From contig NC_068989.1 in NCBI RefSeq assembly GCF_001194135.2, forward strand, positions 2,714,244-2,778,243: DNA of 64,000 nucleotides. The letters run 5' to 3'. Positions within the stretch are counted from its first letter, which is position 1, and every line of letters starts with the position of its first letter. The translations under genes were made by a program, and so were the position numbers. Source of the DNA: Octopus bimaculoides (taxonomy: Eukaryota). The notes below the pieces were generated by a model. The model had not been told where the DNA came from. It worked only from the letters and a program-made list of their open reading frames with translations, and searched no databases. Below are positions 12,601 to 15,600 of the stretch, one piece after another.

Positions 12601-15600
12601 CATAAATTTATACATACATATTTGTGTGTGTTTGGTGATGTAGACAGGAAAATAAAACATAAGGATGTATACATTTTGTTATTGATAATCAGTAATTTCT
12701 GCAGATTACTGATAAAAAATATGTGTGTGTGTGTGTGTGATATAAAAAATATCAACAACAATAACGGAATGTATAACCTACCACTTCCACGTCTATATCA
12801 TAACAAGCAGTTTTTTTGGCATCAGGTCCATCCATCCTGGAAAATAAAAAGAGATGAAAGATTTCATACCAAGATGATAGAAGAAGATGAAGATTTATCA
12901 TCAACCAAAATGTCTGGTTTATAACAAACCAGATGGAGGAAAATCTTATGATGCAAGTCATGCTTCGCTGCACAGACCTTATAATCAACCATCTTTTCTT
13001 CAGACGTCATACATCTAGGACCACATTTCTAATGTGTCCTTTTCCTTTTAAGATGGTGGGAATTTGATCAGTCAGATGGTGAGACAATGCAATGACCCAT
13101 CCAGGTTCTTCTAGAACCAAACTGTTACACATCATCAAGTCCTAGGACTCAGAGAACCAGTTACCTGGTTTCCATGGTGTTATAAATGATCCAAAAGTGG
13201 CGAGCTGGCAGAAATGTTAGCACGCCAAGCGAAATGCTTAGCAGTATTTCGTTTGCCCTTATGTTTGGAGTTCTAATTCCACCGAGGTCAACTTTACCTT
13301 TCATTCTTTCGGGGTCAATAAATTAAGTACCAATTGTGTACTGGAGTCTATCTAATCGAATAAAGAGGAACAGTACTACATCTGACCATTTCTACCACAA
13401 GACCTTTAAACATATCAAACACCAATGAAATAGCAAAAGAGAAAACAAATCAGGTGTGAAATTATGCTCACCTGTCAACACTTTTCCGGTCACGGTTATA
13501 CACTGAGGGTCCGCTAGAAAATATGAAAGAGAAATTGTTAATACAGCCATGAGCTGGGGTAACTGACAATTGAAATAAGAAATATATATATGGGGGGGGG
13601 GGCGTAGTGAAAGAAGCAAAATAAGAGAGAAGAGAATCTAGAAGAACGCGATGATGCAGTTGGATTGTAAAATACGGAGGTTACCAATAAGACTTGGGCT
13701 GGCTGGCTCTTTTATAAAAAAGAAAAACAAAATCCAGGGTGCAAGGGAGACAACTGAAGATTGCCTTGAATTTATTTTTTAGTGGTGCAGCCCGCATGAT
13801 TGTGAATGTCTGGTGTGGCTTATTTCTAGAAAGAGGTTGTTAATTCCTGAATTAGACAATGTGAAATCGGTTAAATGAAATAAGTAGGTAGCTGATACTG
13901 GAAAATGACAGGACCCTAAGAAAAACGACCTGTTATTAGAAAAGAGCCACCGGCAAGTGCTTAAATAATGGGGGGGTTTTCAGGTTTAACTCTTTAAAAT
14001 ATTCAGATAAATGTGATGATTATTTCGATAATGTGGATGTTTAGTTATGAAATGACATTGTCAGGTAAGTGTGAGAGGCTGGATCTGGTTGGTGTGAGCA
14101 TTAAAAAACAAATAGAATATTGGCACCAGATGCAGCCAGTTTAAATGCTAAAAGAGTTGCAGAGTGAACTTAATATGGTTGCAGACAATGTTACAGGAAG
14201 AAATGAGAAAAGCAGGAAAGTGCGAATCAGCAAAAGAAACATCAAACTTTACTTACACAATAATGTGGTTTATCACAATAGGGTCCGGTGCCATAAGAAG
14301 AGGGTGTAGTTTGGAAGGAATCTCAGCAAACTTCATTCTCTTGCATTCAAATATCTAAACAAAAAGAGTTCAAGAGATAATTAAAAAAAAAAAACAAACA
14401 AAATAGGCGCAAGAGTGGCTTTGTGGTAAATAGCTTGCTTCCCAACCACATGGTTCTGGGTTCAGTCCCATGGCATGGCGCCTTGGGCAAGTGCCTTCTG
14501 CTATAGCCTCAGGCCGACCAAAGCCTTGTGAGTGGATTTGGTAGACGGAAACTGAAAGAAGCCTAAGGTTAATATTTCCTCACAACCAGACATGTTTTTC
14601 CAGAAGATTGGAAATGAAGAACCCAGCTTTCATGACAGTGACATTCGATAACAACCATCACTTGAAGTCAACCCAAGGAGGCAACAACACACACACACAA
14701 CCGTCTGCTGATGAATCAGAAGAAATAAATCTTGGATTTCCAAGAAGAGGTTTTTAAAATGCTACAAATAAATCAAAAAGAGAAAGGAAGACAAAAAAAC
14801 CAAAATGGCTCACCTGCTCGAGATACCGGTCACAGTTAATGTACTCTCTTTCATGTGGGTCTTGTAACTTGTGTGTCTTGATGTACTGCCAGAGAGCATT
14901 GATGATGACAGGGCGAGTCTGGGTGTGCATTCCAAGGAGACGAGCCAGTCTTTGATCAAGTTTGAATTGCATTGGCTATTTTAGAAAAGAGAGGGAGATG
15001 AAGAATTGGGTTAATTATTCCTAACCCTGGTGCAAGGCCACAAATTTTAGACAATCAACGGAATTGACCGCCGCTTCATAAGAATAAAAAATATTTTTTA
15101 AAGTCTTTATTAACAACAGAAGGTAAAGTTGATCTCAACATTGAAAAGAGACCCAATTAAAAACTGCGCTTTACCATTTTGTCATTACACTACTTCTGAA
15201 GCAACAAATATTCCCAGACAAGATCTTTCCACCGAAGTAACCCATCAACTGTTCAGCCAAGCCAAGGAGTGTCTCCAGACTTTGTGCTCCATTAAAAATA
15301 GTGTCCTGGTACCATTGGTCAGATTTTGTATCCAACCAAAGACTCTGGTCAGAAACTGGGATCCTCCCTGTTACTTGTATGGTCTGGGTGACCCTGCTCA
15401 GACTGCTTGGCCAAGTTTCTCAGTCTTCTGAGTTAGAACCTGCTTATCATGTTCTCTAGGCTGAGGATCCAGCTGGGTTGATGATTCGTTTAGGTTGACC
15501 ACATGGTCATGGCAGATGAAGAGGTATCTCGCAGAGATGGGGACTAGATGGGCCTCTCCTTGACAGGTCACCTCCAGAATATACTGACAAATGGTGGTAA

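Follow-up and report, generated by a model that had tools for sequence, protein, structure and literature searches.

The question raised by this locus is whether a very short exon of a chromatin-remodelling gene of Octopus bimaculoides is a regulated cassette, as proposed in a preliminary description based on the sequence alone, or a fixed part of the transcript, and what the 14 residues that it adds may do in the protein. The DNA considered is a stretch of 64,000 nucleotides (nt), referred to as the window (NCBI RefSeq assembly GCF_001194135.2, contig NC_068989.1, positions 2,714,244 to 2,778,243 of the forward strand), and the exon, 42 nt long, coding and in phase 2/2, is placed by the window sequence and by RNA junction reads at 13513..13472 on the minus strand, inside the gene for SMARCD1/BAF60. 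The reading favoured here, to which a probability of roughly 0.8 is given, is that this exon is constitutive in octopus, is shared with cuttlefish, is maintained by selection and probably lengthens a protein loop with a likely role in the tuning of contacts.

Splicing of the 42-nt exon in octopus

The host gene was located by a tblastn search in which a human SMARCD1 sequence served as a probe only, and it extends from about 9600 to beyond 21900. The coding part that was modelled (9600..21872, minus strand) is composed of 15 exons, all with AG/GT borders, and is translated into 445 amino acids (aa) starting from MPRTG; more N-terminal exons are located upstream, beyond 21872, and RNA junctions support the 3' half of the model. 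The gene is assigned to BAF60/SMARCD1 because the 445-aa translation matches the annotated SMARCD1 of O. bimaculoides, O. sinensis and O. vulgaris from end to end with 100% identity. In particular, it is a SMARCD/BAF60 subunit of SWI/SNF with full-length similarity, including the beta-sandwich and the C-terminal helices: the human SMARCD1 chains 6LTH_P/7VDV_Y match query residues 6-444 (E 7e-215, 717 bits) and the SWIB/MDM2 domain (Pfam PF02201) is found at residues 210-281 of the model (E 1.4e-25).

On the minus strand the sequence across the exon reads ...catattttctag, then the exon CGGACCCTCAGTGTATAACCGTGACCGGAAAAGTGTTGACAG, then gtgagcataa. The 30 nt that precede it (tattaacaatttctctttcatattttctag; 13514..13543) constitute the 3' splice region, in which the acceptor AG, pinned by the RNA junction 13513/14257, lies at 13515-13514 and a pyrimidine-rich tract at 13536-13516, while TATTAAC at 13543-13537 is by consensus alone a candidate branch site, with the putative branch A at 13538, 25 nt 5' of the exon. 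The exon-final AG is followed by the 5' splice site GTGAGC (13471-13466, minus strand), and this donor is pinned by the junction 12836/13472. On the same strand, the upstream exon (14354..14257, 98 nt, 33 residues), delimited by the junctions 14354/14814 and 13513/14257, ends in phase 2 with ATT ATT GT ahead of the donor gtaagt, and the downstream exon (12836..12782, 55 nt, 18 residues), delimited by 12836/13472 and 12566/12782, begins with G ATG GAT GGA. Gaps in the RNA alignments define the two introns, an upstream one of 743 nt (13514..14256, CT..AC on the plus strand and GT..AG on the minus strand) and a downstream one of 635 nt (12837..13471). The 42 nt encode (V)+13 residues+(R), and their inclusion is in frame and adds 14 residues. 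The ATTAAC-type branch-like element, the pyrimidine tract, AG/GTGAGC and the phase 2/2 of the preliminary description are all read in the sequence and the RNA junctions agree with the two splice sites; its protein readings with and without the exon (28 versus 14 residues) are exactly those given by the frame of the flanking exons. The 42-mer is present once in the window, even with up to 3 mismatches allowed, and the exon is far beyond a chance match.

The use of the exon was followed in raw RNA reads from three 2026 runs of the same species (X20, X21 and X22), of which about 6% each was sampled, with junction differences shown from 1 read in 100 and junctions reported from 3 reads upwards. 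Both inclusion junctions, named beforehand as 14257>13513 and 13472>12836, are present: the one between the upstream exon and the 42-nt exon (13513/14257) is covered by 137, 106 and 132 reads in X20, X21 and X22 respectively, and the one between the 42-nt exon and the downstream exon (12836/13472) by 69, 70 and 82. These numbers match those of the neighbouring constitutive junctions 14354/14814 (80, 55 and 83 reads) and 12566/12782 (74, 52 and 70). The counts of 13513/14257 take in reads shown as 13513/14260 plus 'ACG', which correspond to a synonymous single-nucleotide polymorphism at 14259 (A>G on the plus strand; ATT>ATC, Ile) in the third-to-last base of the upstream exon, for which X21 has the alternative allele only and X20 and X22 have both. 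The skip junction 12836/14257 is not listed in any of the three runs at the 1% setting and the 3-read limit, which places inclusion at about 98% or above in each of them. In the same reads no change of the RNA-editing type reaches 1% within the exon.

A wider sample was obtained from the Logan contigs of 16 further runs. Eight of these are from organism A (four studies), its close relatives B, C, D and E contribute a single run apiece and the last four bear a metatranscriptome label, so that the octopus RNA considered amounts to 19 runs from at least 10 studies. The inclusion form occurs in the contigs of all 16, with both junctions on one contig in 15; in the other (X49) the contig holds the upstream inclusion junction only and the downstream exon is uncovered. 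The skip junction was never seen in these contigs and, likewise, an isoform devoid of the insert is absent from the 27 annotated octopus isoforms that were read (O. bimaculoides, O. sinensis and O. vulgaris). Since reads, contigs and annotated isoforms are all of the inclusion type, the exon is a constitutive coding exon in octopus, present in essentially every transcript. The cassette proposed for octopus is not supported by the runs and isoforms considered, skipping being observed in cuttlefish only. The real alternative splicing of the octopus gene sits instead at the N-terminus: the annotated SMARCD1 isoforms are between 530 and 626 aa long and their differences are solely N-terminal to MPRTG.

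Distribution and origin of the exon

The insert corresponds to residues 295-308 of the 445-aa model and, in the alignment to human SMARCD1, falls between S378 and V379 (INHVIS/VDPNDQKK), in agreement with the ISVDPNDQKK position initially indicated; the further statement that it lies immediately after SWIB is right as to the order and loose as to the distance, with the domain ending at residue 281. Human SMARCD1 has an 11-residue linker at this site and no insert, and the standard linker of this length is found in 84 of the best 120 homologues, as VISVDPNDQKK in vertebrates and VITVEGPDAKK in many invertebrates, which fits the earlier remark that the human and fly proteins are devoid of it. 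Within the best 120 homologues the insert is limited to the octopus proteins and to one further cluster, from cuttlefish; the lineage specificity that had been suggested thus holds, the insert being seen in cephalopods only. These proteins were found with the full-length query, whereas a 65-aa query centred on the insert returned short genomic open reading frame (ORF) fragments only and no insert-bearing protein.

In the cuttlefish Acanthosepion pharaonis the SMARCD proteins carry the insert as GPSMYNRDRKSMDR, as do several Logan transcripts, and the exon of A. (Sepia) pharaonis (e.g. CAE1174961.1) has the same position, length and phase as in octopus, with 12/14 residues identical. As for the intron in which the exon is embedded, a phase-2 intron interrupts the same codon in four gastropod loci and in the pearl oyster Pinctada, and the site is uninterrupted in many bivalve-type genomic ORFs and in vertebrate SMARCD3-type ORFs; a general statement that bivalves lack the intron was considered and is too broad, given its presence in Pinctada. 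As judged from this distribution, the phase-2 intron is old and has been lost in some lineages, and the cephalopod exon arose inside it; its birth would date to no later than the common ancestor of octopus and cuttlefish.

Other molluscs have insertions at the same place. In caenogastropods (Littorina saxatilis, Batillaria, Nucella and the assembly GCA_041734735.1) a 51-nt cassette exon encodes WRDKG[VT]PWNKSLTSAVR and, like the cephalopod one, is internal to the same phase-2 intron after INHxI[TV], ends in AG/gt and puts a basic, Ser-bearing peptide in the same loop, with included and skipped isoforms both annotated. In contrast to the cephalopod exon, it encodes 17 residues instead of 14 and its sequence is unrelated by alignment test. 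In the gastropod assembly GCA_022045235.1, presumably from Haliotis (abalone), an alternative acceptor located 18 nt upstream adds the 6 residues FNPFSR in the same intron and loop; this is not a separate exon, being the translated pyrimidine tract (gagcag/ATTTAACCCGTTTTCCAG/AGTT), and isoforms with and without it are annotated. The Patella locus has no comparable exon in the intron. A gastropod protein (P0080) shows a longer insert at the same site (WRDKGVPWNKSLTSAISENLLSVSTWLPGHTVQKKR), which suggests that the caenogastropod exon is read through or uses an alternative donor.

The coincidence of place invites the explanation that a single mollusc microexon, inherited from the conchiferan ancestor and lost or degraded elsewhere, is the source of both the cephalopod 42-nt and the caenogastropod 51-nt exons, which share the intron, the phase, the internal position and the final AG/gt and encode basic peptides with a common aromatic-Asn ... 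Lys-Ser ... Arg pattern. However, their global alignment does not rise above that of shuffled sequences (p about 0.19 for the peptides and 0.49 for the nucleotides), loose-motif hits in introns are at chance level, Patella is without such an exon, FNPFSR is merely an alternative acceptor, and a single origin would require several independent losses, so that this explanation is regarded as unlikely. A motif of the form [FWY]-N...S...R, tried as the mark of one ancient exon across the three mollusc inserts, was rejected on the same basis, namely the acceptor nature of FNPFSR, the chance-level hits and the shuffles. On the sequences compared, the caenogastropod 51-nt exon most likely arose independently of the cephalopod one.

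Constraint on the peptide and the loop that it probably lengthens

In cuttlefish the exon behaves differently. Two proteins, one with the insert (P0062) and one without (P0063), are identical save for this insert and a 24-residue cassette at the N-terminus, assembly of two runs yielded the skipped contig (L001 and L002), and a skipped isoform is annotated for A. pharaonis (P0195; CAE1174957.1). Because included and skipped transcripts both exist, the exon is a true cassette in this species, whereas in octopus no skipping is seen.

The skipping of the orthologous exon in cuttlefish transcripts makes it conceivable that octopus also has a regulated cassette, which would be skipped in a tissue, stage or condition outside the sampled runs; in fact, raw reads come from three octopus runs only and contigs lose rare variants. 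Against this, all the 19 runs, from at least 10 studies, contain inclusion only, skip reads are fewer than 3 versus about 70-137 inclusion reads per raw-read run, and the skipped form is missing among the annotated octopus isoforms despite their abundant N-terminal variants. Contig breaks near 12839 in the runs X1 and X2, at first taken as a possible trace of skipping, were rejected as such: the overhang of 3-4 nt matches the intron acceptor sequence and the branch is therefore with unspliced RNA, not with a skipped form. Regulated skipping in octopus is for these reasons held to be very unlikely, and constitutive inclusion is retained.

The comparison of octopus with a decapodiform included transcript (L007), assigned by its C-terminal 330 aa that match the A. 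pharaonis proteins, indicates that the two exons have 31/42 nt identical and 11/42 different; of the 15 codons that it overlaps at least in part, synonymous changes affect 9 and V>M replacements 2, and the flanking exons are identical in protein. The split between octopus and cuttlefish is dated to about 250-300 million years ago. With 9 synonymous against 2 conservative codon changes, this codon comparison shows that the 14-residue peptide GPS[VM]YNRDRKS[VM]DR has been kept by purifying selection. There is accordingly little room for the idea that the exon is a neutral passenger, a piece of intron turned exon and tolerated without a function of its own, since the low-confidence loop of the structural model in which it sits and the permissiveness of that loop (other molluscs have unrelated insertions in it and some further homologues 1-4 additional residues) agree with it, but 11 of 42 nt differing with such a codon pattern is unexpected for an unconstrained sequence.

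With regard to the structure, strong homology links the octopus protein to human BAF60A/SMARCD1 (PDB 6LTH/6LTJ, 7Y8R and 9PSJ) and the insert site falls inside the crystallised 144-407 module. According to its description, this module of BAF60A consists of a YEATS-like sandwich of 8 strands, to which SWIB is linked, and binds PU.1 (bioRxiv 10.1101/2025.08.01.667454; PMC12324477); a second preprint names the same fold SWIFT, and both report that it docks PU.1. The AlphaFold2 (AF2) model of the octopus protein, with a mean predicted local distance difference test (pLDDT) of 65.5, contains 8 strands and long helices; strands 287-293 and 315-327 enclose a segment with pLDDT <50 (297-313), in which the insert is contained. 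In the AF2 model of the natural skipped cuttlefish isoform the corresponding strands (365-370 and 380-391) are connected through a loop of 9 residues, with no stretch of pLDDT <50. Both strands are kept with and without the insert, as the structure prediction suggested at the outset could reveal, and the loop is longer with it; the fold is not predicted to change and, therefore, the insert would lengthen the hairpin loop that connects the final two beta-strands of the YEATS-like/SWIFT immunoglobulin-like (Ig) fold that carries SWIB, leaving the fold undisturbed. The proposal of a surface-loop isoform is in this way supported for the predicted loop and not for the isoform, all the octopus transcripts considered including the exon.

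The peptide is net-basic (4 K/R and 2 D) and contains a single Tyr and a single Ser flanked by basic residues, next to its N-terminal GPS. The consensus of PKA is R-R-x-S and that of Akt R-x-R-x-x-S, and PKC prefers basic residues on both sides of Ser; in NRDRKSVDR the Ser has Arg at -4 and -2, Lys at -1 and Arg at +3, a pattern that is neither of PKA nor of Akt and is loosely PKC-like. In cuttlefish the Ser of RDRKS, the putative kinase-type motif of the preliminary description, is conserved together with the basic residues around it. The loop, which would be flexible and net-basic and has a Ser and a Tyr, belongs to a BAF60 module that docks transcription factors and ARID subunits; there it may create or modulate a contact with DNA or with a partner protein, and phosphorylation of the Ser might regulate it; this contact would be switchable by splicing in decapodiforms and fixed in the on state in octopus.

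Some points weigh against the reading favoured here. The contigs prove presence and not absence, the raw runs were sampled at about 6% with their tissues coded, and a tissue or stage with skipping is possible. The loop with the insert is of low confidence in its model, and the mean pLDDT of the two models is only 65.5 (octopus) and 61.7 (skipped cuttlefish isoform). Finally, residues 185-312 of SMARCD2, located before SWIB, are reported to be sufficient for PU.1 binding (PMC12324477), which makes it improbable that docking occurs mainly on the hairpin after SWIB.

A possible parallel is offered by neural microexons. These are defined by a length of 27 nt or less in the strict sense and 51 nt or less in the broad one, and the exon, with its 42 nt, is over the strict limit and within the broad limit; the UGC enhancer of SRRM4-type microexons was looked for and no TGC is found in the 30 nt before it. 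Neuron-specific microexons are known in the chromatin regulators LSD1 and PHF21A (PMC11864812). Like the octopus exon, they are short and in frame and alter the surface of a broadly expressed chromatin regulator; in contrast to it, they are tissue-switched, whereas no switching is seen in octopus.

Genomic surroundings, novelty and meaning

Several repeats are present around the exon. A repeat resembling a short interspersed nuclear element (SINE), at about 13156-13383 within the downstream intron, has very high RNA-contig depth in every run, organisms B-E included, and the reads on it mostly fit in part only, which indicates that they derive from other copies. A second repeat (14430-14720), in the intron between the SWIB exon and the 14354-14257 exon, has a raw-read depth of 300-450 with many variant positions and is transcribed from many loci. 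A (TG)n/(CA)n microsatellite at 12720-12745, just 3' of the 12836-12782 exon, draws unrelated reads and spurious joints. At the end of the window (62001-64000) the guanine plus cytosine (GC) fraction falls to 0.22 with a strongly negative GC skew, the rest of the window being at 0.32-0.41.

As regards the RNA collections, the runs X46-X48, labelled as insect metagenome, and X49, labelled as invertebrate metagenome, hold octopus SMARCD1 transcripts that are identical to the window over the 14257-14356 piece, with one base different in X49; these labels misdescribe octopus RNA. In other molluscs, the SMARCD locus of Pinctada imbricata (L008, 4428-5689) has the 3' end of the SWIB exon (EFINCDKYLEQ) repeated in tandem, in at least 5 copies, within the following intron. 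In gastropods the neighbourhood of SMARCD is conserved: directly upstream of it there is a protein-kinase gene in three loci (L003, L004 and L006), and in two (L005 and L006) its long first intron harbours a cytochrome P450 gene.

The exon was not new to the databases, contrary to what had been supposed. For A. pharaonis and for three Octopus species, gene models in RefSeq and GenBank already include it; in particular, the annotated SMARCD1 of O. bimaculoides (e.g. XP_014770233.1), O. sinensis (e.g. XP_036362436.1) and O. vulgaris (e.g. CAI9728128.1) contains the same exon with nothing different in it. Inclusion reads are present and the exon is real but not novel, an outcome that the preliminary description had itself foreseen as a possible refutation. 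A literature search on BAF60 with microexon, on cephalopod microexons and on octopus with SMARCD1 retrieved nothing on this exon.

For the O. bimaculoides genome, it is an ordinary constitutive exon and adds no new isoform. It is of mild interest that a 14-residue peptide is conserved between octopus and cuttlefish in a BAF60 domain that preprints of 2025 call a transcription-factor docking platform, and the specialist interest is limited to the comparative pattern, that is, a conserved coleoid exon and independent gastropod insertions in the same loop. One tentative extension, rather unlikely at present, is that the post-SWIB loop is a recurrent molluscan target, in which three independent insertions controlled by splicing (14 aa in cephalopods, 17 aa in caenogastropods and 6 aa in a probable abalone) would tune the docking of partners by BAF and of which octopus would have fixed its own as constitutive; if this were true, the loop would represent a regulatory surface of the BAF core module that has so far gone unrecognised. 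Should partner binding be altered by these insertions, splicing would be retuning a chromatin-remodeller core in a manner specific to each lineage.

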